Shown piece after piece: positions 495 through 24,526 of a stretch of 64,000 nt of DNA. The notes under the pieces were generated by a model. That model did not search any database. It was not told the DNA's origin and was given only the letters and a program-made list of their open reading frames with translations. The translations under genes were made by a program, and so were the position numbers. How positions within the stretch are numbered: position 1 is the stretch's first letter; each line of letters begins with the position of its first letter. Source of the DNA: Lepidodermella squamata (taxonomy: Eukaryota > Animalia > Gastrotricha); contig JBLDXI010000013.1 of the NCBI GenBank assembly GCA_047495785.1, positions 2,356,001 through 2,420,000 of the forward strand, written 5' to 3'.

Positions 495-3255
495 AATGAT
501 TCAACTCACCCCAACGGAAAATACCCATAGCACCATATCCCCACCGCGCTGTTGCGTTCCCCAAGTGGATTATAACAATACACACACGCGCGCACGAACA
601 CACACAAGGAAACTCGCGCGCGCAGGCAGGCGCCCACACCTGATGACACAGAGTAGAGTAGCCAGGAAAGCACGAGGAATTCGCATTCATCATCAACCTG
701 CAATCATTTTGATATTTGATATTCGACGTTCTGATGGGTAAACGCAAAGCAATCGTTACCGATTCTCAAGTTACGGCTGATAACGCTGAAGGTACACACT
801 TTCTTAAGCTGGGTTTTTTTTTTACTAATGGTACCATCCGCATAGCAGCACCTGTAAAGCGTAAACCCGGGCGGCCGCCTGGTTCAAAAAACAAGGCGAA
901 AGTGTCTGAGCAACCGGCTGTCGATCCACCGCCGGTCAGACAAGCGCAAGCTAAGAAGAAGACGGCACAGCGAGTGGCACCCGCGTCAACACCACCGCCC
1001 GTCTTTAATCCGATTACGTTCTCAACAGCTAAGGCAAGCAGAGCTAATCCAGTCGTTGTGGCCACTCAACCGCCGATACCGCCGCGCGTGGCCTCGCCGC
1101 AACTTAGCGAGGACAGCATGCCGGATCTCGAGAATCAGAGCAACTCGGCTTCAAACGACTTCAGCGACGAAGTGCCGGAACAGCACCCGCCTCAAGTAGC
1201 GGACTCAAGCGATTTCGCCTCGCCGAACACCGTGCGCCTGCTGAAGGCCCGCGTTCGCCAGCTCGAAGAAACAGTTCAGCAGCAAACAGTTCCACAGGCA
1301 ACGAACTTGAGCCTCACCCCTGATCAAATGCAGGCCATGTTGGATTTTCAGCCCGAGAAGCACGCTGTTTACTACAAGTCGTCCAAGGATGGCAAAGTCT
1401 TGTGTCACGCCGGCCATCGGTACCTGTTTGACCGACGCAAAAACGGCGCCGTCTACGTCCGCTGCTACGACCACCGTGGCGAATTGAACTGCCACTGTAC
1501 GTGGACTAGCCCGCTTCCCGAGTGGCCAGAAGGGCATAACAGCGCTTGTTACCGGTTCAACCTAGAAGAGGCGCCGAAACATGGAGGTAATTCGATATTT
1601 CGACTAAAATTGTTTGATTTTGATTTAATTTTGTTGTTAGAGCACAACCACGAACCAGACCGAGTTGGAGTCGAGGTCGAAATCAACATGGCTAAAGTTC
1701 GGTGGCTCATCTCCAACCAGCCGGCCGTCGTTCCCGGTCAACACTACCGTCAAGTGAAAAGCGAGATCTCGGACTTGGAGGTACGCGAGGCGTTCCCGGA
1801 CCTCGACGAGATCGTCTCTGGGCTGTACAAGCGCCGAGGCAAGAAGTACCCGAAAAACCCGACGTCGTTGGACGACTTGTTTGAGCTGCTGCAATCAGCC
1901 ATCGCCAAAGATCTAGACGAGGAAACACAAGCGAAAATTGAAGCCTTCATCTTAACGCATGACAAGAACGAAAAGTTTCTGTATCATCTGGAGAAAGGTG
2001 AGGACGGCAAGTCCTACATCGAGCCGCTGGTTTTTCGACGGCACTTTCGCGATAAGCCCGAAAATCTTTTACCAAATGTTCTCCATTCACACGATGAGAG
2101 ACGGCGCGACATTTCCGGCGGCATTTGTCCTCATGTCTGAGAAGAGCTCGGCCCTTTACACTCGGGTCTTTGAAACTCTAATGAACGCAATCGACGCGAC
2201 GCACGAAGAGCTGCAGCTCGAGGAGGCGACGTGCGACTTCGAGAGTGGCCTCCTGCCCGTAATTCGGAAGTTGCGGGGCAAGAATGGCAAGCTGGTCAAG
2301 ATCGTGGGATGCTTTTTTCATTTCTGCAAAGCCCTCCGTACCTGGGTCGACGAAAATGGCCTAAAGGTGAGCTAATTTCTTCCTCTTCAATTCGATTTTA
2401 ACCTGTTACTTTTAGACTGAGTATGAATCGGGGCCGCCGACCGACGACGATGGCAACCGGATCATGGGCCGTCAGACGGCCGTCAAGTGTCTAACGTCGT
2501 CTACGTCACGATTCGCCGCTTCCAGGCTCTTGCCCTGCTCAAAGAAGACGAAGTTGAGGCCGCCGCTGAGTTGCTCTTCTCCAAATTGCCACCTATGCTG
2601 AGGGAAAAGGACTTCGAAAAATATTTCCGCGGCACCTGGATGAAGCGTTTTCCAATCAGTGAATGGAATGTTCATGGACAGTGCATTCGAACAAACAACG
2701 GCGTCGAAGGGTGGCATCACCGCATGAACGTGGTCGCTAATCATCGCAAACACCCTGCTATCTGGTTTTTCATTGAGTCTATTCAAAAAGAGGAGGCCGA
2801 AGTAGCTGTCAAGATGGCCAAGTTCGAAAAACAGGGCAAGCCGTTGTGCAAGTCGAAGAAGAACCAGTGTTTAAAAAATCAAGCCTTAATTAATGTCGAA
2901 AAAGCGTTTAACGAAAATTTAGTTCACCTAGCCGCCTCTCGGGACCCGTTGAAGCATAAGAAGAAAAATGATTTGCTCATTGAATTTCTTGATAACGTCT
3001 CAAAATTGTTGAAGAAAAAAAATATTAGAATATTTGTTGAAATTTCTATTTGTAACTCGTAATTTGTTGTGGCTTTGTTGCTTGGTCTTTTCCTTTTACT
3101 TTTCGTTGTTGTGGCTTGAATAAAGTTTATTTACTCAATTGTTTACTCGGTGCGCATTAATTTTGGGGATTATCGCGTTGGGCGCGCGCGCACGGGGATA
3201 ATCGCATTGGGTGCGTTGCTTCGGGTAATTTCCGTTGGGGAGAGTTGAATATACG
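495..3255 (+). mobile_element. Mutator-like (MULE) DNA transposon
   Basis: Imperfect ~36-bp TIRs (attcaactcaccccaacggaaaataccc.. vs reverse complement of ..gggtaatttccgttggggagagttgaat). Flanked by a perfect 9-bp direct repeat cagtctggg at 486-494 and 3256-3264. Encloses a MULE transposase. Confidence 0.92.
734..3062 (+). pseudogene. FLYWCH + MULE DDE transposase, frameshifted
   Basis: AT-hook-like KRKPGRPPGSK, FLYWCH-like region (GHRYLF..YVRC..HNH), WFFDGTF, TCDFE, GCFFHF, RTNNGVEGWH. Introns at 792-845, 1587-1640 and 2367-2415. The reading frame changes near 2015-2025 and again near 2465. Confidence 0.85.
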
Positions 3256-6582: not shown

Positions 6583-8454
6583 ATGCTCCCAAAACTTCCT
6601 TTTTCAGTTCTATTTGTGGCAATTTCCGTGTTTCAGTTCTCTGCCGCATTCAAATCACTTCAGACAGCTATACCGAATGGCGACAAAGTTCCCGATCCAT
6701 GCGAACCTGCCTCAATTTGGCAGGGCGTAGGGCATCAGGATCCCCGCGGGGGCGGTCCCAGGAACCCGTTCGGTTCCGACTTTTTCAAAGCTGGAAAGGT
6801 TTGGACTACAGAATTTTGCAAGCTCGACAGCGATGGCGACGGGAAGTCAAACGGCCAGGAGCTTGGTGATCCCAATTGCGTTTGGACGCCTGGTTCAACC
6901 CCAGCAATAACTGACCCCAAACAACTTAGCCACCCTGGAATTTGCGAGCCAATAGATTCAACTGTATGCCTGGGGAAGAACACGTTTCTGCAAAGCTGTG
7001 CAGCTCTGGGAAAGACGACACCAGCTCCTTTAACAGGTTGCCCTGGCCTCAACGAACCTGGAGTTTATCAGCAAATTTTCACGTTTGACAAGGCCAAATT
7101 GTCGGACGAAGAAACACAATACATCTGTCAAATCTTTGACATTCCATCCGATGAAGAATACGAAATTATCGCGGTATGTCGCTTAAAGATTTCTTTCTTT
7201 TTTAACCGAGTAATTGTTCAAATTGAAATGTTTAGTGGGAACCGATTATTGATAATCGCGAAATCTTGCACCATATGATTTTATATGCTTGTGAATATTG
7301 GTTTAAAAATCCAAGCGAACTGCCGTTCAATGAGCCAAAAAAGTGTCGAATGGTTCCTGAATATTGCCCATCGATGATTATAGTATGGGCCTATGGAATT
7401 GAAGGCCAGTGTTATTCCGCCGAATTTGGGGCACCCTTCGGCAAAGGACACTACACTAAAATGACATTGCAGCATCACTACAACAACGACCAACGCAAGC
7501 CCGGGTACGTTGATTCGTCTGGCATCAGGTTTTACTATCAGAAAAAGAAGCGGCCTCAAAACAAGGGCTTGATAGCTTTTGGCGATATGTTGCTGAAAAT
7601 CCCACCGAATACGCAGAGCTTCCACGTGACAAACAAAATGTCATCACAATGCACACAACAATTGCTTACGCCCAATCAGCCTCTACGTATGGTCTCGCTT
7701 CTGATGCACATTCATAAACAGGGCAGTTACGGCCGTTTGGTGTTAAGCAAGAAAAAGGCAGGTTATTCGATAGTTCTTGTTGATGAAGCGATCACTTATG
7801 ATAAGCCAAAAACCGCGCTTTGGACTGGAGACCATAAAATTATCCTCGAAGCTGGAGATGAGCTGACCTTCACTTGCGGCTACAACACGGAGAATAAGAA
7901 TACCTGGTCCTTTTTTGGCTCACAAACAACTGATGAGATGTGTTACTATTTTATCGATGGTAAGCATATATATTTTACCAACTTATACTTCTGAAACTTG
8001 GATTCGTCTGATAGTCTACCCAAGGCCTTACAATCTGAATTACATAATGCCGGCGAGTTTGGGTGATTTGGATTACTGCGAACAAATGGGGGTGCCAGGT
8101 CAGCCATGGGGTGCGCGTGGGTGTGTATTTTCCAACTTCTACAGCAAATTTGGGGCAAAGCCAGGCAACCCAGTGCCCGAGGACCTCGCCAAACTCGTGC
8201 AGGACTGTGGCTGCATGGAATCATACCCTGCCAAAGGCTGTTCTGCGGCATGTTATAACTCTATGAAAAAGTACAGCTTATTTGGCGATCCTTGCGTCGC
8301 CAGCGACAACGTTTTCATGATGGGAATGCAAACATTCTACGACGACTCGGAAATATTAATTCGAGCTCAATCACAAATGGATGTTTGCCAGAATTTGGGT
8401 TCTGAACCCTTGCCGAGCGAAACATGTGGTTTCCGAAACTCGGCCAGTCGATGA
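6583..8454 (+). CDS. Temptin-domain + copper type II ascorbate-dependent monooxygenase (DBH/MOXD1-like)
   Basis: Signal peptide. Temptin signature IPNG..VPDPC..WQGVGH..GGGPRNPFG.DF..W..C.LDSDGDGKSNGQELGDPNCVW. Cu-ligand motifs LHHMILYAC, LQHHYNN, MHIH and DEMC. Introns at 7174-7235 and 7960-8014. Confidence 0.9.
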
Positions 8455-9695: not shown

Positions 9696-10112
9696 TCATT
9701 GATATTTTTGAGCTAGCACTATAAAACATATTATGGCAGTTTTTACCACTATCATAGCATTCGCCATTGGTGTATATGCCTCGTTGCACAAATCAGTGTT
9801 CCGGCAGCAATTAAAGCCGCCACATCCAAAGTTGTTGTAGCAATCAGAATCGATAATCGACAGACAAGCTGCGTCGGTCGTACAGCCTCGAAAGCCCGTG
9901 CTAGGTACAACGAAGCACGGAGTTGTCTGAAGATTTTGCTGCTGGCCCGTGGGGACAGTGCAGTTCACTATTCGCCAGTTGTACTTGAGCGTGCAGTTGG
10001 TCCACATTGGATTGCATTCATAGCAGAAGCTAACGGCGCTCACTTTTCCAAGAGAAATCCAAGCAAGCAAAGCTGCACTAGATACGCAAAGAATGGCCAG
10101 AGACCGGCTCAT
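9696..10112 (-). CDS. Three-finger (Ly6/uPAR-like) GPI-type protein #1, intronless, no Trp-rich insert
   Basis: Signal peptide, CYEC..C..C..C..RGC..C..C..C..CC.....CN (12 Cys), hydrophobic C-terminal tail. Confidence 0.88.
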   Translation of the reverse strand: MSRSLAILCVSSAALLAWISLGKVSAVSFCYECNPMWTNCTLKYNWRIVNCTVPTGQQQNLQTTPCFVVPSTGFRGCTTDAACLSIIDSDCYNNFGCGGFNCCRNTDLCNEAYTPMANAMIVVKTAIICFIVLAQKYQ

Positions 10113-10594
10113 CTATATAATAAGATATTTTCATTTCAATTTCGATAAATGATAAATTCATTAAATCGTGAGAATCGCAAAATAAAAGAAAATTGCAATG
10201 GAAAATTTAAATAAAAATTTCGGGCACAGAAGACATCTTTCGCAAAATCGATGCTTTAAATGGAAAATAGCTGGAAAAATATGAAGAAGATTTATGAAAT
10301 GATAAAATTAATAATCAGCAGGCTCATATACAAGCAAACATGTTTTGTCGACGCATATTGTTTGACACCATATTGAGTTACGGCACTATCCGAAGGTGTG
10401 AATGCGTTAAAAAAGTTGACCACGTTTTCTTTGTGGAGCCAAAGGTTTCTTGGTTGACCTATATTAAATTGAACCGAAACCGATAAATCGAATCTCGAAT
10501 CGATTTGCAAAGGTCACCACGCTCATTCCTTTAATTATTTTATTCTTCAGTTTCGTCAATTGGATTATAATAAAAATAGTATCTATACACAATG

Positions 10595-11068
10595 CTATGA
10601 ATCGCTGACATTCATCTGATATGAGAACAAAAATCCGAAAAAAATTGCGAACAATAAAAGTTTTGGAGGTTCAAAGTTCGAATCGGACTGATTGCACAAA
10701 TCTCGATCCCGACAGCAATAGAAGCCACCGCATCCGTATGAGGAATAGCAATTCATGTAACGTGTCGGGTTACACTGGATAGTGTTTGTAACGCAACCTC
10801 TTTGACCCCTATAATAAATAGGAAGGAGTATTTTTTTATCGCAAAATTAAAAAATGGCTGCTTACGTGGTTGGCATGACGTAGCAGGGCGTGCCGGTATC
10901 ATTAAGGTTGCAAACTTGCTGGTACCAAAACGTCGAAACGTTACACGCTGTTGTAGCGTTGCAAGCGTAACACATTGTCACAGCCGAAACGCCGTTATCA
11001 AGAAAAACGGCGATTAAAAACGGCGCAACGATCAGGGCGGAGGCGAAGGCGAACAACGAACTATTCAT
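10595..11068 (-). CDS. Three-finger GPI-type protein #2 (2 exons, no Trp-rich insert)
   Basis: MNSSLFAF..CYACNATTAC..PCYVMPTT, intron 10809-10865, GQRGCVTNTIQCNPTRYMNCYSSYGCGGFYCCRDRDLCNQS, then a hydrophobic tail. Confidence 0.88.
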
Positions 11069-11280
11069 ATTTTTTCTGCCGTATAAAGTCAATTTTATTT
11101 TGTTTACAAATGTAATAAAGAGATAGCAGATGATAACATCAATGATAAAATTGTCACGTTTTTGACACCTCGGTCGTCGTGTATAGTTCGTAAAATTTGT
11201 CAATAGAATGTAACATGTTTGTTGCGGAAAGGTGATAAAAAATTATGTGTTAGTTGCGCATCATCGTTTCGTTGTTTTTT

Positions 11281-12948
11281 TCAATGTGGCGTTAGTTGAG
11301 GCGCTCGACCTGTCAGATGGTCGCAAGGGTTGATGAAACCGCTAGTTTCGAGCTGCAGCCGCTTTTCGCGGTGGTGATGCCGTTCGGTGCGTAGTTCCGC
11401 TGGATCGAGGGCTTTGTTGATAGCGCGAAGAAGGGGCTGTTGGCCACCTCCGCAGACATCGAAAACATCGTCAAAGTCGAGCGTCCAGAGTGCGATGCCG
11501 CCGAAGTGACGGTGTAGAGCATACTGAGCTTTAGCGGCAACGGTTTCGGTGTTTTGAGTCGAAATCCACTCGTTAACTTTGTAACTTAGAAGAGCCACCT
11601 TAAAAATCGGAAATTTGAACTATTAGAATTATAATTTAATTTCCAAAAACCTCCTCAGCCATTGGATCGTAGATTGTTTCGTATAATTTTTCCATTGCGG
11701 TCGAATCGTCGCATTGTTCCTTCAAGCAAGTCTGGAAAAAATTATTTGTAAATTTTTTTCAAAATTTTCTCGTTATTTTCCTTACCTCGTAGAACGCGTT
11801 TAGCCCCGGTTCCTTAGTAAAATGACCAGCAATACCAGGTCCGCAAGTCGAAATGCCAGCCCCAGTGCCATTTGTGTTGTTCAGTGAGTCATCACATAGA
11901 CGGAAAGAACGGCCATAAGCTGGGATTCCCAGGTTCAAATTCTTGCTCAGCGCACCTTGCGACAGCCAATGATCAACGGCCCATTCCTTAAAAATTGAGA
12001 ACGCCATGAAAAACAACTTGATCCAAGAAAATAGTTTACCATGGTAAGCTGATGGCGATCTGGATCGATTTCAGCTGGGTCGTACCGAAGCGGAGCGTTG
12101 TAGCCAGTTGTGTTGTCCCAAGCTCCGTGGAAGTCGTAGGTCATCAGGGTCATGAAATCTAAGGCCCTTCATTATGGAAACGAAAATTTCAAAATCTGGG
12201 AAATTTTTCAAAATTATTTTACTGGTCAATTTCTTTGATTTCATAGGCGCTTTCAACGACTTTCTTGCCGACACCAACTGCAGCTGATAGGATTAATTTT
12301 GGCTTATTGGTTAAGGCAGCTTCTTGGCGAAATTCATCGGATAGCATCTTAAAAATTTCTTAAAAATATCAACAATCAGGTAATAAAATCTAAAAATTCA
12401 AACCTTCATCCATTTTGTGAAGCGTTCCCTGTCCTCGGGAGGACTGCCGCGATTCGCCGGGTATTCGATGTCGATATCTAATCCATCGAGTTTATTATCA
12501 CGCAAAAATTTGATAGCTTCACGGTTGAAATTAGCCATGCGTTCTTCTTCGGCCATAATGTGGCTAAATGGCTCCATCCCGGCGTTCCAGCCTCCGATGG
12601 CTACCATAACCGATAAATTTGCATTTCGATGTTTGAGCTCCAACAAGGCATCAATCATTTCTGGCCGAATAAATTATTGTTTGGGGTAAAATTCGATGAT
12701 ATCAACTAACCTCCATCATTGTGCTCTCGCATTTTCATAACACCGTCTTTCACGTCGAGAAATGCGAGGACGATGTGCGAGCAGAGATTCGGATCAATCA
12801 AATTTCCGACATTTTCGTGAGACAATTTGACCGGAACTTGACGGTACTGCGCCCAATTAGCGATGTAGCAGACACGCCGCATCGAATCACCGACATGCAT
12901 TAGGTACAATGCGCTGAGAAGGTGGGCGAATACTCCGAATATTTCCAT
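11281..12948 (-). CDS. GH18 chitinase (multi-exon, no CBM14 domain)
   Basis: Signal peptide; RVCYIANWAQYR, VMVAIGGWN, intact catalytic LDGLDIDIEYP (DxxDxDxE), MTYDFHGAW, KNLNLGIPAYGRSF, GIALWTLDFDD. All exons join in frame by GT-AG introns. Confidence 0.93.
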
Positions 12949-13235
12949 GATAATGTTTCGAGCAATTTAAAATGAAAATAATGGGGGAAATCAGTTTCTG
13001 ATGTAGCATTTTAGGCTGGATGGCACGCGATCTGTCCACATTTCAGCACGCGAGTAAAATTCACAAAAATTAACCTTTTATTTCCACAAAAATGCGTTTT
13101 GATTTTTCTACAACTAATAGCGAGGAAAGATGGCCGTGTCGAGAAAGATCGTGAATTTGATTAAAATTTTAAAATGATTTCAAAAATTCAAAATGATTGC
13201 AAGAAATTGAGCAAATATTTCAATAGAATGTCCAA

Positions 13236-13814
13236 TTATCGAATGAAGCGAAAGACGACCAGCCCGCTGAGTATCACCAAAGATGAAGCCAGCATTTCGG
13301 GTGAAGAGTTGCATCGATCCTTGTCACGGCAGCAGTAGTAGTCGTGGCAACCGTGGGTTGGCGAGAAGCAATCCTGGGGCGCTGTTTAAGAGATAAATAC
13401 AGTTGCAAGTGATACTTAATATAAATTCGACAAACTTGACGAGAAGAAGTTCCACCAGAACGACGAAATTGGTGATGACCAATCGAAATCGTAATCACGA
13501 ACACCACCAGACACAGCACAGGCACCAGTGCCAGCACAGCCTCGACTTCCACTAAAACGAAATTCATAGTTCAATTAAGGCGCCGAAATACTTGGCCATC
13601 TCACTTACGTTCTAGCGTTTTTGAAACAGTTGAAATCAAGGCCGCCTTTTGCGCTACCGCCAGTCGCGTTACAAGACACTAGCTTCCAGTTGGTCCTGTC
13701 GTTACAGTGGGCTACGTTAGGATCGCACAAGAAGCAGTTGTTTACGGCGTCACACAGCGCCGCCAGAAAGACTAGCGCGAAAAACGACCCAAAAACCAGC
13801 GAGGCGTTGCTCAT
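13236..13814 (-). CDS. Three-finger GPI-type protein #3 (3 exons)
   Basis: VNNCFLCDPN..CFKNART|GSRGCAGTGACAVSGGVRDYDFDWSSPISSFWWNFFSS|PQDCFSPTHGCHDYYCCRDKDRCNSS, then a hydrophobic tail. Confidence 0.9.
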
Positions 13815-14031
13815 CTTATATCACGCAAATATGGCCTAAAATCAGCGATAAATCAATCATGCAATTTTTTTTAGAAAATGATTTGTAGAACAAACAGGGC
13901 CTGGGAAAAGTTTTGATCAACGCTCTGATAGAAAATACATATAGTGAGGCGTGTCATATTAAAGGGTCAAATATTTTGAGCAAATAATTTTGAGACTATT
14001 TTTGAGGCGAGAAAATGCGTTCATTCAGTTC

Positions 14032-14593
14032 TCATTTGATTATCCAAACTAGTGTTACGAGCAGCAAAACGGCGATAGGTGTTAACGATGGCGCCCAGGC
14101 TGAGTTGCATCGATCGCTATCACGGCAACAGTAGAAATCGTGGCAGCCATGCGATGGACTGAAGCACGAGTGCCATACTGTGGGTTGAAATAGGTTGGAA
14201 ATTTAAAGTCTCAATCGAAAGGAAGCAGTTATACCTGGCAAGAATTGTTTCCAAACCCAAAACCATGGCCGTGACCATTCAAACTCATAGTCTCTTACGT
14301 TATTCGACGTTCCACAAGCTGTGTAGTTACCGCAGCCTCGAGTTCCACTGCAAAAAATTTTTCGTAAAAATTAGGAAAATTATATAGCAAATGACGAACG
14401 TTTGCGCAATTTTGTAGCAAGGAATCTCGGTGCCTAATGTAGCAGTGCATGTTTTCAAGGACCATTTAGCCGTATCGAAGCAGTTGTCAACATTTCCATC
14501 GCAAAACCAACAATTACTGACAGCTTCAGCGTGGTGAAGTAGGAGAACAAAGCCAACGAATGCGATGAGTCTCCAAGAAAAGTTCGAAATCAT
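14032..14593 (-). CDS. Three-finger GPI-type protein #4 (3 coding exons)
   Basis: VSNCWFCDGN..CYKIAQT|GTRGCGNYTACGTSNNVRDYEFEWSRPWFWVWKQFLP|VWHSCFSPSHGCHDFYCCRDSDRCNSA, then a hydrophobic tail. Confidence 0.9.
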
Positions 14594-14921
14594 AGATCAG
14601 CTGCAAAATTTTAGAAAAAAATATATATAATCAATTTTCCAACAATTTACCCACCTTTTACTCTCGGGATTTTATCGGTTAGATGTGTTTCTGTATCTGA
14701 GAATAAATTCTACGAAAAAAATAATTTGTTGAAAAACCGATTTCTCTTCGCCTTATACAACAAACAACATAGTGCAAGCACTCAACACAAATTAATAAAA
14801 CAAAAAATGAAAATAAAATCAACTAATAAAATCCCATTCAGCACGGTATAATGTAACGCGAGAGAAAAAAATTGAGCAATTTTTCTTTCAGACTTGAATT
14901 TGAACAAATGCATATAAGATT

Positions 14922-15492
14922 TTAGTATAGTACATAGGCGCCTATGACCAGTGGTAGCGCGATCGCCCCTAGCGCTAGTGGTGTCGAGCCAGGCATCGAG
15001 GCGGTGTTGCATCGATCCGCGTCACGGCAGCAGAAGAAATCGTGGCAGCCGTGGGTTTGCGAGAAACAATCGTGCCAGACTGAAAGAATAATTAGAATTA
15101 TCGCAATTTTTCGAATTCTCATCTTACTCGGAAGAATTTGGTTCCAAACCCAAAGCCATGGAGCACCCCAGTCGAACTCGTAATCTCTGACGTTGTTCGA
15201 GGTGACACAAGCAGGGTAAGTCGCACAGCCGCGGTTGCCACTTAAAATTTGCCATAAAAATGTCAAAAATGTATAAATTTCCGAATTAAACTCACGTTCT
15301 TCCGATCTTGTAGCACGGAGTATCGTTACCTAGAGCACCACTGTTGCAAGTTCTCAACTGCCATTGGTTAGGATCTTTGCAGTTGGCGATGTTGATGTCG
15401 CAAAACCAGCAGTTGGACACAGCATCGACGACGCTGAAGAATCCGATGATGGCGAAAAAGCTAGCGAGAACCAACTTATTCGACGAAATCAT
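14922..15492 (-). CDS. Three-finger GPI-type protein #5 (3 coding exons)
   Basis: VSNCWFCDIN..CYKIGRT|GNRGCATYPACVTSNNVRDYEFDWGAPWLWVWNQILP|WHDCFSQTHGCHDFFCCRDADRCNTA, then a hydrophobic tail. Confidence 0.9.
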
Positions 15493-15753
15493 TTGCTGAA
15501 ATACGCATGGGTAAACGTTAAAAAATCAGTTATAGCTAAAATTATTTACCCGATTCAGCTGGGCACTATATTAGCAACTATTGAAAACTATAATGCCTAG
15601 GATAAAGATGGAACACAATTCTGAGCCTCTTTTTCTTGCTTTACAAAATTTTAGAAAACAAATAATCAAGACATGAGATTTTTAGGTGACATCGATTGTA
15701 CAATTGAATAAAATTTGAGCAAAATTTAAGAAAGATAAATCAATAAATGATTG

Positions 15754-16350
15754 TCAATGACGCTTCATTAGGGCCCATAGTGCCAGACCACTGGAACCCA
15801 GTAAGAGCCATAGGGGTGCTCCGATCTCCATCGCTCCAGGCGTGGCGGTGTTGCATCGATCGCGATCTCGGCAGCACCAGAAATCGTGGCTACCGTGTTG
15901 GCTGAAGGAATCGTGAGCAACTATTCGGCATTCATAGAAATAACACTGCCATTTCAAACATAATATGGAGCGTCAACTTACCGACGAGGAACTGCTTCCA
16001 GATCCAGCGCCATGGCGCTCGCCACTCGAAATCGGTATCACGAATACCTTGCGAACTCGTGCAGGCTGCGAGGGAAGCAGCGCAACCACGGCTTCCACTG
16101 AAATTTACGAAAAATTATATTTGGTCGATGGCAAATGAAACTCAACTCACGTTATGCTCGATTTCCAACAAGGCGTGTCATTGCCCCAGAGACCACTGTT
16201 GCACGTTACAACCTTCCATGTGCTCGGGTTCCTACAATCGCCCCAGTTGTAGTCGCAAAGCCAACAATTGTTCACAGCATCGACGGCTACGAAAAGAACA
16301 GCCACAGCTATGGTGCCAAAAACGGCCGCATGGCGCCGAGCTTGAAGCAT
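15754..16350 (-). CDS. Three-finger GPI-type protein #6 (10-Cys variant)
   Basis: VNNCWLCDYN..CWKSSIT|GSRGCAASLAACTSSQGIRDTDFEWRAPWRWIWKQFLV|VAHDSFSQHGSHDFWCCRDRDRCNTA, then a hydrophobic tail. Confidence 0.9.
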
Positions 16351-16462
16351 CTCTCTTCTATAACCTCTACAAAATATTGGAAATTGAAGTAGAAAAATGT
16401 TGATTTTAGTCATAAAATTTGAGCAACAATTTTGATTTTGATCTCGCAAAACAATTCAAAGT

Positions 16463-17058
16463 TCAGTTCCAATTCCTTAGTAATAGGAAGCCGAAAATTG
16501 ACGCCACTAGAAGTAGAGGTGAACTGTTTTGAGGTAGAGCCGAGTTGCAGAAATTTTTATCGCGACAGCAAAACCATTCGTGGCAACCATGGGATTCACT
16601 GAAGCAGTCATGCGGAACTGAAAAGTTGATAAAAGTTGGATCAATCAAGTTCACGACTGAATCGAACTTACGGACGACAAGCTGTTTCCAAATCCACCTC
16701 CAAGGCGCATTCCACTCAAAATCGGTATCGCGTAGGTTGTTCGAAGCTGTGCATGAAGGCAGGGTGCCACATCCTCGACTTCCCCTATGAAAATTAGCAA
16801 TTTTTAAGGAGGCTGAATATATTCAACAGCTTTCGCTTACGTTTTCGTGTTTTTGTAACACGTTCCAAGCTCCTCGCCGCAGTTTGCCGATATCCAATTT
16901 GTTGGATTTCTGCAATCGGCTATATTGTAGTCACATAGCCAACAGCTGACATTGCGCTTCTTCTCCAGAGCGACTTGGCCATCGACTTGGCCGATGTCTG
17001 ATAGCGTAACAGCTAGTAGCGCTATGGCCAGTGCCGAACTTGCGATTTGTATCAACAT
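16463..17058 (-). CDS. Three-finger GPI-type protein #7 (with short pro-segment ending KKR)
   Basis: ..QVALEKKRNVSCWLCDYN..CYKNTKT|GSRGCGTLPSCTASNNLRDTDFEWNAPWRWIWKQLVV|PHDCFSESHGCHEWFCCRDKNFCNSA, then a hydrophobic tail. Confidence 0.9.
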
Positions 17059-17891
17059 GGCGCAAAAAAGGTATATCTAACGAACAGCAGTAGTAGCATT
17101 GATAAGTTGCCATTTTCTTGAAATCTTGATGACACACTTAATGCCGCGAAAAATGGCGATTTAACGCGCACACGACAAACTGACAGCGCGTGTTTTATTG
17201 CGTGTAAATTACCTGCGCGCGCTTCACAGCGACGCGCGCACAGCAGAAGGCCTTTGTGTCAAAAAGTTGAGGCGCAAACAAAAGATCAAGACCTGCATTA
17301 CAGCGGCGTGTTAATTACAACTGTTGTTATTGTTACAGTTCTTGTTTTTGTTACCGTGTCTGAAACTATTTTCTTGCATATAGCCACCGCTTATTGTTTC
17401 GCAAAAATTGTTAGCGGAGAAAAAGCCTGTGGCGATGACTATGTTACATACAAGGCGTTATGTGGACATCTCTAAATTTCGTTACAAGAAAAACACTCAC
17501 GCGCGCGCTTTGTTCGACGTGCGGCTATAGAATTTCGTTATTATTTTGAGGTGGATTATTACAGCGTGATTTTTACGGCGACTCGCGTTAATTACCAATT
17601 ACAAAGATAAAGCAGCAATTATCGCACGAGGTTATTTATTATCACAGCAGATGAATTGTGTCTAAGCTGCTGTTGTTTTAAGCTACGTTTCCTAACGAGG
17701 GTATCAAAGAATAATATTTTTGGACGTGACAGTACAAGGAACATGAAATTCAAAAAGCAGTGGGCGACGCGCGATGGCCCGGAGCGGAAAAGCGGGAGAA
17801 ACAAGAGCAAGAATGTTAATTCAAATAAAAGACCTCTACTATTTTTTCAACTTGAAGCGTACAAGATATACATTGGTGATATACGAGGGAG
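17059..17891. promoter_or_regulatory. Divergent intergenic region between the two arms of the three-finger array
   Basis: Head-to-head starts at 17058 (-) and 17892 (+). Rich in CGCG runs. The right half is duplicated upstream of gene #9. Promoter function is inferred from position only. Confidence 0.5.
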
Positions 17892-18445
17892 ATGCGACTT
17901 GAAGCTTCGCTTCTAAGCTTGGCCGCTCTTATTATGCTAATACCAGCCATTCAGGCGGTTAATAACTGTTGGGAGTGTGACGAAGATATCGCTGATTGCC
18001 ACAATAGTGCTAACTGGAAAGTTGCGAGATGTGTGGCTACACACGGCATCGCTCAACCGTGTTACAAACACGAACCCAGGTAGGAAAATATACTTAAATT
18101 GTGATATATAAAATTCAAAGTCACGATTATTATTGGGTTGATAAATTCTATCGTTATTATTTGTATTTTAGTGGCCGTCGCGGATGCGCATCGATGGCTG
18201 CGTGTGCCGCCAACAGTGGCTCGCGTCCTATCGCTTATGACCCAGCTCAACCTTGGATTTGGATCCTACAACAGATATTCCCTGCCTCGAAAGATTGCTA
18301 CTCGGGAGTTACCGGTTGCGCGGGAATATGGTGCTGTCGCGATTGGGATAGATGCAATTCAGCCCACCGAGCTACATCGACGTCATTGGCCCTAACTTTC
18401 GCTAGCTGTGGATTCGCCTTATTTATGATGCTATTACGCAGATAA
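17892..18445 (+). CDS. Three-finger GPI-type protein #8 (2 exons)
   Basis: VNNCWECDED..CYKHEP|SGRRGCASMAACAANSGSRPIAYDPAQPWIWILQQIFPASKDCYSGVTGCAGIWCCRDWDRCNSA, then a hydrophobic tail. Confidence 0.92.
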
Positions 18446-19375
18446 CGTTTCTAGTTGTTATACTTCAATATGATACCCTTGTATTAGCTTGATATTCAAC
18501 AAATTTGTTATTGCTTATAATGGATCCTGTATTCTTGTAACGAAGTTGAACTTTAAAATGCTGGTTTTTTCGAAAGTAAAAATGCCTTGCCAGAAATCAA
18601 CGCGTTCATTGACCATTTTTTAAATTTTTTGTATAAATTCCGGCTTTTATTTTGTTACCAGTCTCAGGAAGGTTAAGAAGGTCATGTTCTCAGCGCTCGA
18701 TTGATGATGCCTAATAATACGCTCGTTATCGGTTAACGAAATGCAACGAAATGAGTCCAAGAAATTTTGATTTAGCTTTTTGGCTAGCCATTTCATCAAT
18801 TCGTGAAAGTTGCTCATCAGGTTGCCACCGTGGGAAAAAGGCTTTTGGCCTATTAAGAATGTTTGGCTTGCCAGCAGACCCGATTTTCAAAGATGGCCGG
18901 GAAAGGCGGAAAGTATGCATATAGGGTGACGGCAATCAAGCGTTAGATGTTATATGGGCCTCTTGATCTTTCGTTGCGTGAGTTAAAATAATAAACTCGA
19001 GCGCTTTGTTCGACGTGCGGCTGGAATTTCGTTATTATTTTAAGATGGATTTTTGCTGCGACTCGCGTTAATTACCAATTACAAAGATAAAGCAGCAATT
19101 ATCGCACGGGGTCATTTATTATCATAGCAGATGAATTGTTTCACGAGCTGTTGCTGTTTCAAGCTAGAGAGTATTAAAAGAAAAATGTTACTCTGCAGGT
19201 ATTTTTGAACGTGAAAGAGCATATAGGGACATTGTCGTAAGACTCGAAAAGCAGTGGGCGACGCGTGATGGCCCGGAGCGGCAGAAACAAAAGTGAGAAA
19301 CGCTTATAACAGAAAACAAGACTTCTCCTATTTTTTCAACTTCAAGCGTACTTGCATTGGCGATAAACCAGGGAG

Positions 19376-19906
19376 ATGCGACTTGAAGCTTCGCTTCTAA
19401 GCTTGGCTGCTTTTATCATGCTAATACCAGCCATTCAGGCGGTTAATAACTGCTGGGAGTGCGACGAAGATATGGCTGATTGCCATAATAGCGCTAACTG
19501 GAAGGTTGCGAGATGTTCGACTACGCACGGCAACCCTACACCGTGCTATAAACACGAACCCAGGTAAGAAGACATACTTTTTATAGCATATCAACTCAAA
19601 AGTCATGATTTTGCTAAATTATTTCTTACTAGTGGCCGTCGCGGATGCGCAGCGTTTGCTTCATGTGCTGCCAATAGCGGTCTTCGCCCTTTCGCCTATG
19701 ATGGCAACCAGCCGTGGCTTTGGGTCTTGAATCAAATATTTCCAGCAGCGAAAGATTGCTACTCTGGAGTTATCGGTTGCGGGGGAATATGGTGCTGTCG
19801 CGATTGGGATAGATGCAATTCAGCCAACCGAGCTACTTCAACGTCATTGGCCCTAACTTTCGCTAGCAGTGGATTCGCCTTATTTATGATGCTATTCCGC
19901 AGATAA
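19376..19906 (+). CDS. Three-finger GPI-type protein #9 (2 exons; duplicate of #8)
   Basis: VNNCWECDED..CYKHEP|SGRRGCAAFASCAANSGLRPFAYDGNQPWLWVLNQIFPAAKDCYSGVIGCGGIWCCRDWDRCNSA, then a hydrophobic tail. Confidence 0.92.
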
Positions 19907-20425
19907 ATTGTCTCAATAGAGCTAATAATTTTATCAGCTAGAGTATTATTGCGTAATTAATCTTGAATTCTTGTAATGAATACTGGTTTTGTTAGTAAAA
20001 AAGCAGCCCCAATTTTTCGGAAAATGAGCCACTTTTTACGCGCGTTTGCATATTAATTTTTCCTTAATTGTTTCGCCATGGCGCATCGGAAGTGAGACAA
20101 TGCCTTGCCAGAAAAACAACTCTTTTGTTGCCCTTATACGCTTTCATCGACCATTTTTTTTTTAATTTTCGGGTAAATTCCGGCTTTTGTTTCGTTACCA
20201 GCCAGGATGGTGAAGTGTCTTTGTTCACAGCGCTCGAGTAGTGATAGTTAATAATACGCTCGTTATCGGTTAACCAAATACGAAAACAGGTGCCGGGCAA
20301 TGAAATGGAAGAAGACGACTTGTCAAATGAAATTAACCTCCAAGAACGGGAGATAATAGCTTCCTATACCCGCTCGATAGTATTATATGCAACAGTTTAG
20401 AGTCGTTTCAACTTGAAATCCAACC

Positions 20426-21000
20426 ATGCAACTTCATCAACGGCCAATATTAATCAGCCTTTTCGGGCTGATGACTTTACTGCCCCCACTTGAGGCTGTT
20501 AATAATTGCTTTTACTGTGATCCAAACGAAGCCGACTGCCACAACCCGATCAATTTCCAGGTAGTAAAATGTAGCAACGGTATCGCCGGCGTTAATCCGT
20601 GTTTCAAAATAAGAGCCACGTGAGCTAGCAATCCGGGTCCTGATTTTTGATTAATTTATTTTACTATTATTTTTCCGCCCAGTGGATCAAGAGGCTGTGG
20701 AACATATACAGGTATTATTGGTGTAAGTATTATTAATTCTCGTAAATTCTCTTACGTGATACAGCTTGCAGCACTAACTTTCCCATCGCGAACAAAGATT
20801 TCGATCCCGATCAGCCTTGGTTGTGGATCTTGCGTCAATTATTTCCTGTTCAAAAGGACTGCTTCTCATCGACTGAAGGCTGCAATCAGCTATTCTGTTG
20901 CCGCGACTTTGACAGGTGCAATTCAGGAGTTGCAATATCCGCTAACTTTTTCGCGCTTTTCTCGCTGATAACCCTGGCTACTGGTCTGTATCCATCTTAA
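20426..21000 (+). CDS. Three-finger GPI-type protein #10 (3 exons incl. 29-nt micro-exon)
   Basis: VNNCFYCDPN..CFKIRAT|GSRGCGTYT (20683-20711)|ACSTNFPIANKDFDPDQPWLWILRQLFPVQKDCFSSTEGCNQLFCCRDFDRCNSG, then a hydrophobic tail. Confidence 0.9.
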
Positions 21001-21455
21001 AAATGCTCATCTCGCCTGAAAAATTATTTAATGCTCAAACCGCTAAAGAATTGTTCAATCAAACATACTGTTTATGGACTTTGAAGTATAGTGAGATCGT
21101 TTCCACGAATAAAAAGTTCTTTTTTTTGATAACTAGCACTTTCATATTCTCTATTCATTTTCTCCATTTAAAACGGCCCGGAAAGAGACAGTGCCAGAGG
21201 ATATGACACCTAAGATCACTACCATAATTTTTATAATAAGCTCTGCAGAACATAAAAATAACCGCACAAGTTGACAAGTTTCGAACAAAAAGACTTCGCG
21301 GTTTCGTTATTGTCTTGGCGATTCCTCGAAAAAGCAGCTTTTAGCGCATTAGAGGCGACAAAAAATATAGCGCAGTACCGGTAGAAATTTGCGAATTTTA
21401 AAGCGCCTCGAGGCATTCTCTGTAGCGCTTAGAGATTTCACTCGCAATTCAAAAA

Positions 21456-21963
21456 ATGCGAAGCTATCATAATCTCGTCGTAGTTTTTTTCATTACTTTG
21501 GCTGTGGCAACTGATCGAGCTAACGCTGTCAACAACTGCTGGGAATGTGATGAAGACATGGGCGATTGCCACAATCCCAACAATTGGGTAGTCGCCCGAT
21601 GCACAGCAACCCACGGAATCCCAATGCCCTGCTACAAACACGAGCCAAGGTAAACATTATTGCATAAAAATGAAAGAAGTCTTACTCTTTCAATAAAGTG
21701 GAAGAAGAGGATGTGCTTCGATATCAGCATGTTCTGCCAATAGCGGCTTCCGTCCTGTTAATTACGATCCCCAGCAGCCTTGGATATGGATCCTACAGCA
21801 GCTGTTCCCAGCTTCTAAAGACTGCTATTCACCTGTGACGGGTTGCGCGCAAATTTGGTGCTGTCGCGATTGGGACCGTTGCAACTCAGCTCGGAGCCAA
21901 AAGTCGAGTCTAACTTCCTTACCCATTTTCGCACTACTAACTCTCCTGCTTTTTCGGAGGTAG
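21456..21963 (+). CDS. Three-finger GPI-type protein #11 (2 exons)
   Basis: VNNCWECDED..CYKHEP|SGRRGCASISACSANSGFRPVNYDPQQPWIWILQQLFPASKDCYSPVTGCAQIWCCRDWDRCNSA, then a hydrophobic tail. Confidence 0.9.
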
Positions 21964-22328
21964 TTGCAGTATAAAGAAAATGTGTATCCTAGTTTTAGCG
22001 GTTTAGCCATTTACGGCTCGAGGGCATCAATTTTTTAAATAAAAAGATAATAGCCTGTTTAGCAGATTCGTTATAACGAGATTATTTAGAGTCATGTTTT
22101 CCATCTATTATTCGCCTTTCGTTTTGAATTCGCTAACTTTAATCCATCGCAAAAAACTGCCAGCGCTAAAAACAAGCATTTAAAAACATGGTACCTTTGT
22201 GAACGGTTGCTAGTGACACTTTACCGATGCGTTTTACCTCAAGTGGTAAGCTAAAAGGCTTCCTATTATCTCTTTAACCACATCTCATTACGAGTTTGAG
22301 GTTTCCAGTAATTATCATTTGTAATAAC

Positions 22329-22884
22329 ATGGATTCAATTCGGTGGATAGCCATCTTCGTATTTTTCATCGGTATTTCGGCTGTAGAAGCAGTTAATAAT
22401 TGCTTCTATTGCGATCCAAACGAAGCCGACTGCCACAACCCTATCAACTTTAAGGTGATCAGATGCAGCAGTGGAATCGCCGGAGTGAACCCATGTTTCA
22501 AAATTCGGGCGACGTAAAAAAAAATCCATACTCTTATTCATTTTATTTACCGTTTTTCCATTGCAGTGGCTCTAGAGGCTGCGGAACATATACGGGTAAC
22601 AATTGTTGAACTAGATTTTCATTAGGCTTTACATATCATTTTTTGAAGCTTGCAGCATGCCTGGTACAGTGTCAGACCGAGAATACGACCCAGATCAGCC
22701 CTGGATTTGGATTCTTCATCAGTTATTTCCCGTCGTTAAAGATTGCTTTTCGGCAACCGAGGGCTGCAATCAACTCTACTGCTGCCGGGACTTCGATCGT
22801 TGTAACGCAGCTAATTCTATTATCAGTCCCAAAATTGTATTCACAGCGTTTACCAGCGTCATTTTACGGCCAATACTCAGCTGA
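22329..22884 (+). CDS. Three-finger GPI-type protein #12 (3 exons incl. micro-exon)
   Basis: VNNCFYCDPN..CFKIRAT|GSRGCGTYT|ACSMPGTVSDREYDPDQPWIWILHQLFPVVKDCFSATEGCNQLYCCRDFDRCNAA, then a hydrophobic tail. Confidence 0.9.
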
Positions 22885-23118
22885 TATAGACTTGAATTAT
22901 CAAAGCGAAACGTTGCTCAAAATTTGGTCTGAAATGTAAATAAAAATATCGTTTCCGATGTGGAAACGCTCGCCCTGTTTTGTGAAGGAAACGATGTAAA
23001 CATGGCTTTTTAATTCAGCGAGCCCATCCCCGTTTCCTTACTTGTCAATTCAAACAATAAAAATGCTGCGCGTCGCTAAAAACTGTCAACTCCCAAACAA
23101 AATTTTCCAATTTTAGCT

Positions 23119-23670
23119 ATGAAGAGGTTATTTTTTCCTTCGATTTTGGCGATTTTGTTGTCGCCAAGTTTGGCAGTAAATAATTGCTTCTATTGCGATC
23201 CTAATACATCGGATTGTCACGATCCGAGCAACTTTCAAGTCGTAAAATGCAGCAATGGCATTGCTGGTGTTAATCCGTGTTTTAAAATTAAATCCACGTA
23301 AGGCTATTGATGATACCGAAGTTAATTTTATAACGCTGCGCGGTTTTTCAGAGGCTTACGGGGATGCGGTACTTATGCAGGTAACTTATAGGGCCTTTAG
23401 GTGCCTTACTGTAATTTTAACTGTCTCCCAGCTTGCAGTACGAACTATCCGATACAAGATAAGGATTACGATCCTGACCAACCTTGGATATGGATTCTTC
23501 ACCAGCTTTTCCCCGTGATGAAGGACTGCTTCTCTGAGACGACTGGATGCAATCAATTATTTTGCTGCCGAGATTTCGATCGATGCAACTCATCTCCATC
23601 AGCATACCGAATAGATCTATTCATAACTATTATTGGGCTAGGAAGCTCCAAATTCTTGTTCTCAAGCTGA
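23119..23670 (+). CDS. Three-finger GPI-type protein #13 (3 exons incl. micro-exon)
   Basis: VNNCFYCDPN..CFKIKST|GLRGCGTYA|ACSTNYPIQDKDYDPDQPWIWILHQLFPVMKDCFSETTGCNQLFCCRDFDRCNSS, then a hydrophobic tail. Confidence 0.9.
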
Positions 23671-24526
23671 GACGTAGCATTTCAAATAAAACGCGGTTCA
23701 TGTATTGCAATCCCGACTTGAAACGGTACCTTTATTTATTTCACTTGATATCTTCATCTCTTGCCGTCGCACTTACATAGAGCTCATCAGAATTATTATA
23801 GAGATAATTATTTGATAATGTAATTGCGGCAACTTTCCACGGGCGTTCTTTGCGCAGATATATCGGAAAGTTGTATATATTTACGCATCCATGAACAATA
23901 TTTATATAAAGCCATTTGCACAGGAGACAAAAAAATTTGATATAGTGATTTTTGTGAGACATTGATTGTATTTTTTTATCTTTCAGAAATTGAGCAAGAC
24001 AGCCGATGAGCAAAAAAACACACAAATATATAGATGCGCCATACAACATTCCCACATATTTTTTCTTTCTATACAACAAAAATTTCAAGTTAAAATTCTC
24101 AATCACGTGCGACATAATTTTTAACGGTAATATTCATTTTTTCCGCATATATTTGCTTTTCATATAAATAGAAATTTATTTACGTTCGGTGCACAATATG
24201 TATGCGATAAATATTGACGGAAAAATCTATTCAATTGTTGTAATTTTTTTTTACAAATTTAACAAAATTTATACACGCATGACATTCAAGATGAAAACAA
24301 AGATGCAATAAGCGACATGATTTTTTTCATTAATTTGCACAAAAAATGATTATAATATAATTATAATATAATTCAGAAATATTTTGCACAATCTCTCAGG
24401 GCCAACTTCCTCCAAATCCGGATTTCAACCCGCCGATCAACGTTTAATATAATTTGCGTGAGAACAAAATTAAAGAGTGCGAGAAATAATATTATATAGC
24501 TAAATTAAAATTTTGTAAATAATTTT

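Follow-up and report, generated by a model that had tools for sequence, protein, structure and literature searches.

The stretch analysed here, which we call the window, comprises 64,000 nucleotides of the gastrotrich Lepidodermella squamata (assembly GCA_047495785.1, contig JBLDXI010000013.1, positions 2,356,001 to 2,420,000). It holds a tandem array of small genes, named g1 to g13 below, whose products probably form a divergent subfamily of the Ly6/uPAR (LU) three-finger proteins; 11 of them carry a tryptophan-rich insert in the third finger. A six-frame motif scan of the 64-kb window for the hallmarks N-C-x-x-C, RGC, P-W-x-W and CC-R-x-x-x-x-C-N gave 13 occurrences, all between positions 9696 and 23670. 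For the gene models, GT-AG introns were enumerated on condition that the reading frame stays open and the product agrees with the paralogs, and after splicing there are 13 complete, intact paralogous open reading frames with products of 138–161 amino acids. A first-pass annotation, made from the letters alone, had described 13 small genes mostly split across open reading frames, and this agrees with the scan and the spliced models, in which 12 of the 13 are split by introns.

Genes g1–g7 lie on the minus strand (9696–17058) and g8–g13 on the plus strand (17892–23670), so that the two groups point away from each other on either side of about 17.5 kb. The introns are 48–92 nt long with GT-AG ends, and g1 is the single-exon gene. 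Common to the other 12 genes is a phase-2 intron of 49–92 nt directly before G-x-RGC, and this intron contains in-frame stops in all 11 insert-bearing genes. A second intron is positioned after the Trp motif in g3–g7 and inside RGC-x5-C in g10, g12 and g13.

The two genes without the insert are g1 (9696–10112, minus strand; 138 amino acids), which has 12 Cys in its mature domain and the classical Ly6 motifs CYEC at the N-terminal end and CCRNTDLCN at the C-terminal end, and g2 (10595–11068, minus strand; exons 10866–11068 and 10595–10808; 138 amino acids), which has CCRDRDLCN. The remaining minus-strand genes are g3 (13236–13814; exons 13609–13814, 13436–13551 and 13236–13381; 155 amino acids), whose insert carries a variant Trp motif; g4 (14032–14593; exons 14400–14593, 14235–14347 and 14032–14177; 150 amino acids; insert DYEFEWSRPWFWVWKQFLP); g5 (14922–15492; exons 15296–15492, 15128–15240 and 14922–15079; 155 amino acids; insert DYEFDWGAPWLWVWNQILP); g6 (15754–16350; exons 16151–16350, 15982–16097 and 15754–15920; 160 amino acids), which has 12 Trp; and g7 (16463–17058; exons 16841–17058, 16672–16784 and 16463–16617; 161 amino acids; insert DTDFEWNAPWRWIWKQLVV). 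On the plus strand follow g8 (17892–18445; exons 17892–18079 and 18172–18445; 153 amino acids; insert AYDPAQPWIWILQQIFP), g9 (19376–19906; exons 19376–19563 and 19633–19906; 153 amino acids), g10 (20426–21000; exons 20426–20619, 20683–20711 and 20765–21000; 152 amino acids), g11 (21456–21963; exons 21456–21649 and 21699–21963; 152 amino acids), g12 (22329–22884; exons 22329–22513, 22567–22595 and 22649–22884; 149 amino acids) and g13 (23119–23670; exons 23119–23297, 23352–23380 and 23432–23670; 148 amino acids).

Some members of the cluster appear to be expressed. The plus-strand genes were compared with a public run that is labelled only as probable RNA; its contigs cover the exons of g8, g9, g10 and g12 with nothing between exons, and give no coverage of g11 and g13. 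At intron 1 of g9 a contig lacks precisely the 69 nt of the predicted intron, which has GT..AG ends, and at intron 1 of g10 a contig exits exon 1 at 20619 and resumes in the letters of exon 2, so that both predicted introns are backed by these joints. A variant at 20686, in exon 2 of g10, is present in the RNA-like contig and in a DNA run. Across positions 17800–23700 of the window, numerous site differences and small indels separate a 2024 DNA-like run from the assembly, and two contig versions coexist in places (for example at 23253–23544, with 0 and 26 differences), which suggests either heterozygosity or different strains.

Nearly all gene pairs have reached saturation in their synonymous differences, and the nonsynonymous divergence (dN) is 0.06–0.5, so the duplicates are old and under purifying selection. 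An exception is the pair g8/g9, in which the synonymous divergence (dS) of the scaffold outside the insert is 0.27, whereas synonymous changes are at saturation in the two inserts. The first exons of these genes differ very little, which suggests a recent gene conversion limited to this part of them. Pseudogenes or chance open reading frames are ruled out by the 13 intact frames, the conserved Cys, a dN far below the saturated dS and the spliced RNA-like contigs.

Protein anatomy and relationship to the LU family

All 13 proteins begin with a hydrophobic leader ending in A-V-(N/S)-N-C or similar, about two residues before the first Cys, and finish with a hydrophobic tail of 12–20 residues that lies 0–3 residues from the stop and has small residues before it. 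Leaders and tails were assessed by eye, and on this inspection every one of them fits the signal peptide and glycosylphosphatidylinositol (GPI)-like tail described in the first pass; the layout is probably that of a secreted, GPI-anchored protein. The mature domain can be written as C1-x2-C2-x6-C3-x10-C4-x9..20-C5-x10-(RG)C6-x5-C7-[7 or 30-31]-C8-x5-6-C9-x4-C10C11-(R)x4-5-C12-N. In all 13 proteins it contains the LU framework, with C-x-x-C close to the start of the mature chain, some ten framework Cys and CC-x4-5-C-N at the terminus; two Cys of the family pattern are additional to this. The total of 12 Cys that had been reported applies to 12 genes but not to g6, which has 10, Cys8 and Cys9 having both become Ser. 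This joint loss implies that Cys8 and Cys9 form a disulfide pair in finger III of the other members. The notion that loop II is unusually short did not survive: the span from Cys4 to Cys6 is about 20 residues and is not notable, the same span in CD59 being about equal.

This arrangement is that of the GPI-anchored LU proteins, such as CD59, Lynx1 and Drosophila Sleepless (QVR), Boudin and Coiled, which likewise have a signal peptide, one domain of about 80–105 residues and a GPI-type tail, with C-(Y/F/W)-x-C at mature positions 3–6 and a closing CC-x4-5-C-N. Both g1 and g2 have C-Y-x-C and CCR(x)xDLCN, and CCRNTDLCNEA of g1 can be set beside CCQTDLCNEA in one of the Pfam-positive LU genes that this genome contains. 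A BLASTP comparison of g1 with a Pfam-positive LU gene of this genome matched NCC-x-TDLCNEA with an E value of 0.002 (a single comparison), and pairwise BLASTP matches are restricted to the C-terminal motif. In the ESM Atlas, the ten best named neighbours of g1 are all three-finger proteins (LYPD2, TGF-beta receptor II, arthropod UPAR/Ly6, activin receptor, LYPD1, CD59, cytotoxin, Sleepless and LYPD6); all scores are below 0.9, and we therefore treat the neighbours as a lead only. A query with the C-terminal half found nothing in the Atlas.

The likeness extends over the whole domain when profiles are compared. Once the insert columns were taken out, the family alignment was compared by hhalign with an alignment of 16 LU domains that the Pfam scans had detected in this genome, and this gave a moderate signal (score 25.9, P 9.7e-5) over 69 aligned columns (2–82 against 2–77), with Cys1–6, the CC pair and the final C-N on LU Cys columns. 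None of 100 column shuffles reached this score (mean 10.0, sd 2.2, maximum 18.2), and the reversed query scored 10.5; an earlier run with only four LU sequences had been weak (P 0.0085). Taken together, the motifs, the language-model neighbours and the profile-profile comparison make it likely that the cluster is a divergent, single-locus LU subfamily, without formal membership by curated models. The hhalign result and the neighbours thus agree with the earlier description of atypical three-finger proteins. Such proteins are in general very common, and what is new here is the local, Trp-rich variant of finger III. The cluster proteins differ from known LU proteins in lying below the reach of the Pfam profiles UPAR_LY6, Toxin_TOLIP and QVR, in having 12 Cys where 10 are usual, the two extra ones being the pair Cys8–Cys9 of finger III, and in the insert itself.

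Additional disulfides in or near finger III also occur in the three-finger ectodomains of the activin and TGF-beta receptors (Pfam Activin_recp and ecTbetaR2), which are among the language-model neighbours of g1. These differ from the cluster in being ectodomains of transmembrane kinases with a CCC run in the Cys pattern, and the cluster proteins give no Pfam match to them. Within the genome, the LU genes at C54:1603207 (L017) and C3:760985 (L020) share with the cluster a C-terminal half of the form (R/K)(G/N)C-x3-C-x6-C-x4-7-C-x4-CC-x4-5-C-N and a GPI-type tail, but they lack the insert, have another intron position and differ in the N-terminal half (the L020 gene being without the C-x-x-C pair), and they are missed by the N-half profile of the cluster family. 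An extra Cys pair in finger III also occurs outside the cluster, as C-x3-C-x6-C-x4-7-C-x4-CC at C54:1603207–1603335 in L017 and at C3:760796–761149 in L020; a neighbouring copy in L020 (locus positions ~700–975) has an in-frame stop.

Searches of the whole 121-Mb assembly with g1, g8 exon 2 and the N-half profile found no relatives beyond the 13 genes; the best outside matches of g8 exon 2, which are weak, are LU genes on C54 (E 0.04) and C3 (E 0.3). No relative was found among 5.8 billion clustered proteins with g1 and g8 exon 2 as queries, and a canonical LU gene used as a query there was likewise empty. Nor did a relative emerge from 1.84 billion representative proteins, searched with the family profile by full HMMER, or from metagenome contigs. 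The tandem cluster is apparently lineage-specific, and so far it is one locus of one genome. Few families of invertebrate surface proteins are as expanded and as poorly understood as those with LU/three-finger domains, and the cluster illustrates how far such a domain can drift from curated profiles: censuses based on homology would miss genes of this kind. A 2026 survey of LU genes in 22 phyla, which counted 3–109 per genome and stated the functions of invertebrate members as unknown, did not include Gastrotricha (PMC13719153).

The remainder of the genome has a large LU repertoire in several tandem clusters (for example C6:314112–396157, C26:1104113–1115081, C3:427624–507854 and C2:534557–581162), with ~100 LU-type exon matches outside the cluster and ~20 QVR-type matches clustered on C6. 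An identical 113-residue open frame with an 8-Cys LU domain is present on two contigs (L060, C30:26029–26259, and L061, C60:173782–174012); the two copies could be a recent duplication, the cargo of a mobile element or uncollapsed haplotigs.

The tryptophan-rich insert

Cys7 and Cys8 are separated by 30–31 residues in 11 genes and by 7 in g1 and g2, giving a net insert of ~23 residues. The insert of about 30 residues claimed at the outset for 11 of the 13 genes is thus correct as to the genes and the spacing, but the net gain is ~23 residues and not 30. The insert opens with (D/E)-(Y/F)-(D/E)-(F/x)-(D/E); next comes W-x-x-P in g3–g7 or P-x-Q-P in g8–g13, and after it W-x-W-(I/V)-(W/L)-x-Q-(F/I/L)-(L/F/V)-(P). 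The motif P-W-x-W-(I/V)-(W/L)-x-Q-(F/I/L) is found in 10 genes, whilst g3 has SFWWNFF instead, as the first pass had also read them. Inside the Trp motif only the positions x2 and x6 vary, and in g6 and g7 the motif is of the PWRWIWKQ type, rich in Trp, Arg and Lys. The spacing of the Trp residues, W-x-W, does not fit the C-mannosylation motif, W-x-x-W.

In a maximum-likelihood tree, all insert-bearing genes fall into one clade (support 99/98) apart from g1 and g2, and within this clade g8–g13 form one group of two trios. On this tree the insert was gained once. Searches of clustered proteins, representative proteins and metagenome contigs found no protein with the same insert outside the cluster, and in this respect the earlier view that the architecture is unlike that of the described LU families is sustained.

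For the structure of the insert, AlphaFold was given g1 and the product of g8 exon 2, which is a half-domain. In the g8 exon 2 model, which is a poor partial model, residues 27–35 (PWIWILQQI) are helical, and residues 21–40 are the only part with a pLDDT of 64–74. The prolines before and after the Trp segment fit helix caps, and on a helical wheel the variable positions x2 and x6 lie on one face. From the model we regard a helix as fairly likely for this segment. The first pass had proposed an amphipathic helix; a local helix agrees with the model, but with about 8 hydrophobic residues in 10 it would be hydrophobic rather than clearly amphipathic. The further suggestions, of an exposed helix that inserts into a membrane or binds a channel or carbohydrate, gain no support from these models. 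The hydrophobic moment does not separate helix from strand, being higher for alpha in g4, g5 and g8–g13 and higher for beta in g6 and g7. A complex prediction with the two g8 exon products as separate chains (ESMFold2, without alignments) scored 0.01, which is evidence neither way.

Proposed role of the insert and its alternatives

On balance, we think it probable that the cluster encodes divergent, GPI-anchored LU surface proteins in which a Trp-rich helix on finger III serves as a hydrophobic docking element. The scaffold would be one divergent LU domain with a cleaved signal peptide and a C-terminal GPI signal, and it would keep the LU framework (C-x-x-C, CC-x4-5-C-N and ten framework Cys) with an added Cys8–Cys9 disulfide in finger III. 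After the split from g1 and g2, one ancestor would have gained ~23 residues between Cys7 and Cys8. These would consist of an acidic and aromatic lead-in, (D/E)-(Y/F)-(D/E), and a proline-bounded, almost wholly hydrophobic segment, P-W-x-W-(I/V)-(W/L)-x-Q-(F/I/L)-(L/F)-P, most likely a helix of 2.5 turns. The Trp segment is near-invariant across paralogs whose synonymous sites are saturated, which argues that it is the working surface of the family. We infer the helix, its exposure and its target, as well as the disulfide map and the GPI anchoring: the helix would dock where lipid meets water, or against a partner protein that offers a hydrophobic patch, and together with the GPI anchor it would provide a second attachment point at the cell surface.

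Lipid specifically, as the docking target, we would name only tentatively. Snake cytotoxins (cardiotoxins) and wheat puroindolines are small disulfide-rich scaffolds that present hydrophobic or Trp-rich loop residues to a bilayer. They are functional analogues of the cluster proteins only, with no homology implied, and they are secreted and carry no anchor; in the cytotoxins the loops are the tips of short hairpins and lack an inserted helix, the puroindolines have an unrelated fold, and lipid binding by the cluster proteins is a hypothesis. Should the helix bind lipid, the cluster would add a new mode of action to those of the anchored LU proteins. The gastrotrich epicuticle is unusual in being a stack of membrane-like lamellae that covers even the cilia, and a very improbable extension would make the cluster proteins two-point membrane tethers, with the GPI anchor in the cell membrane and the interfacial Trp helix inserted in a second bilayer, holding the first epicuticle lamella to the plasma membrane or the lamellae together. 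Were that true, the three-finger fold would have found a new use, and a trait that defines the phylum would become accessible at the molecular level.

Several results weigh against the docking proposal. A Pfam hmmscan of g1 and the exon products found no LU family at E values up to 10, and genome-wide scans with PF00021 (UPAR_LY6), PF00087 (Toxin_TOLIP) and PF17064 (QVR) found none in the interval of the cluster (C13:2365696–2379670), whereas elsewhere in the genome they gave 37 UPAR_LY6, 48 Toxin_TOLIP and 46 QVR exon-level matches; the comparison with LU, Toxin_TOLIP and QVR profiles suggested in the first pass has thus been run, and no curated LU profile detects the cluster genes. The hhalign probability is only 58%. 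The full-domain AlphaFold model of g1 is unusable (pLDDT 48), the fold having failed because the alignment had depth for the N-terminal half only, MAFFT having misplaced exon fragments against full-length g1. The helix comes from a half-domain model that is poor overall (mean pLDDT 51), and the alternation of Tyr, Phe or Trp with acidic residues, like W-x-W-x-W, would also suit a beta-hairpin. Finally, the evidence of expression concerns four plus-strand members only, and its single source is a run that is merely presumed to be RNA.

The main rival explanation keeps the same class of GPI-anchored LU protein but gives the Trp helix a mainly structural part, packed on the beta-sheet as in CD59, with the ordinary roles of invertebrate Ly6 proteins (serving receptors and channels as accessory subunits or modulators, or helping to assemble junctions) carried out through other surfaces. 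We consider this possible, though doubtful. CD59 also holds a helix in the same finger III segment, from the Cys7 equivalent to the CC pair. About 8 of the 10 helix residues are hydrophobic and conserved, with only x2 and x6, on one face, free to vary, as would fit a helix buried on most sides, and the plus-strand members have gained aromatics beside the CC motif (CCRD-W/F-DRCN) that could contact it. However, a disulfide-rich domain of 100 residues cannot fully bury three Trp together with Ile, Leu and Phe, and g1 and g2 show that the scaffold needs no insert. The locus thus offers a natural comparison of proteins without the insert (g1, g2) and with it (g3–g13), and of what the Trp-rich element adds to the scaffold. 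If the helix only packs on the sheet, the cluster is one more lineage-specific Ly6 subfamily.

An unlikely alternative is that the insert forms a beta-hairpin that lengthens finger III and bears an aromatic ladder like that of a tryptophan zipper, with strands (D)Y(E)F(D)W and W-x-W-x-W joined by a turn x-x-P. The loops of three-finger proteins are normally beta-hairpins, and in g4–g7 aromatic and acidic residues in the lead-in, and Trp in the motif, alternate strictly at i and i+2; in g6 and g7 the beta moment exceeds the alpha moment. The AlphaFold model, with its best local confidence, nevertheless places a helix on P-W-I-W-I-L-Q-Q-I, the alpha moment is higher in g4, g5 and g8–g13, and prolines break the lead-in of g8–g13 (Y-D-P-x-Q-P), which is better read as a helix N-cap than as a strand.

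We give little credence to the suggestion that these are defence effectors whose Trp-rich loop binds and disturbs microbial membranes, as do the puroindoline loop, indolicidin and tritrpticin, perhaps after release from the anchor. The Trp/Arg/Lys-rich composition of the motif in g6 and g7 would suit such a role, as would a tandem expansion with divergent paralogs, a pattern frequent in immune gene families. The motif of g8–g13, however, has no net positive charge and is preceded by an acidic stretch, the motif is strongly conserved rather than diversifying, and all members keep the anchor signal. It is equally improbable that the resemblance to LU domains is convergent and that the proteins have a separate cysteine-rich fold sharing only the terminal motifs, since this would accord with the want of Pfam, PDB (searched by sequence and by profile) and large-library sequence matches, with the reach of pairwise BLASTP and with a g1 model that leaves the three-finger fold without three-dimensional confirmation, but not with a whole-domain alignment in Cys register far above shuffles, with neighbours that all belong to the three-finger clan, or with a leader, single domain and GPI-type tail found also in the Pfam-positive LU genes of this genome.

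Neighbouring genes

A multi-exon GH18 chitinase gene lies on the minus strand inside the cluster, between g2 and g3 (11281–12948 of the window), with exon matches to Pfam Glyco_hydro_18 at E values of 8.5e-18 and 4.3e-5. Just upstream of the cluster, a plus-strand gene at 6583–8454 combines Temptin_C (E 1.9e-37) with both halves of a copper type II ascorbate-dependent monooxygenase (DBH/PHM-like). Long open reading frames on the plus strand at 716–3062 contain a FLYWCH zinc finger (E 4.4e-5) and may be the remnant of a MULE-type transposase.

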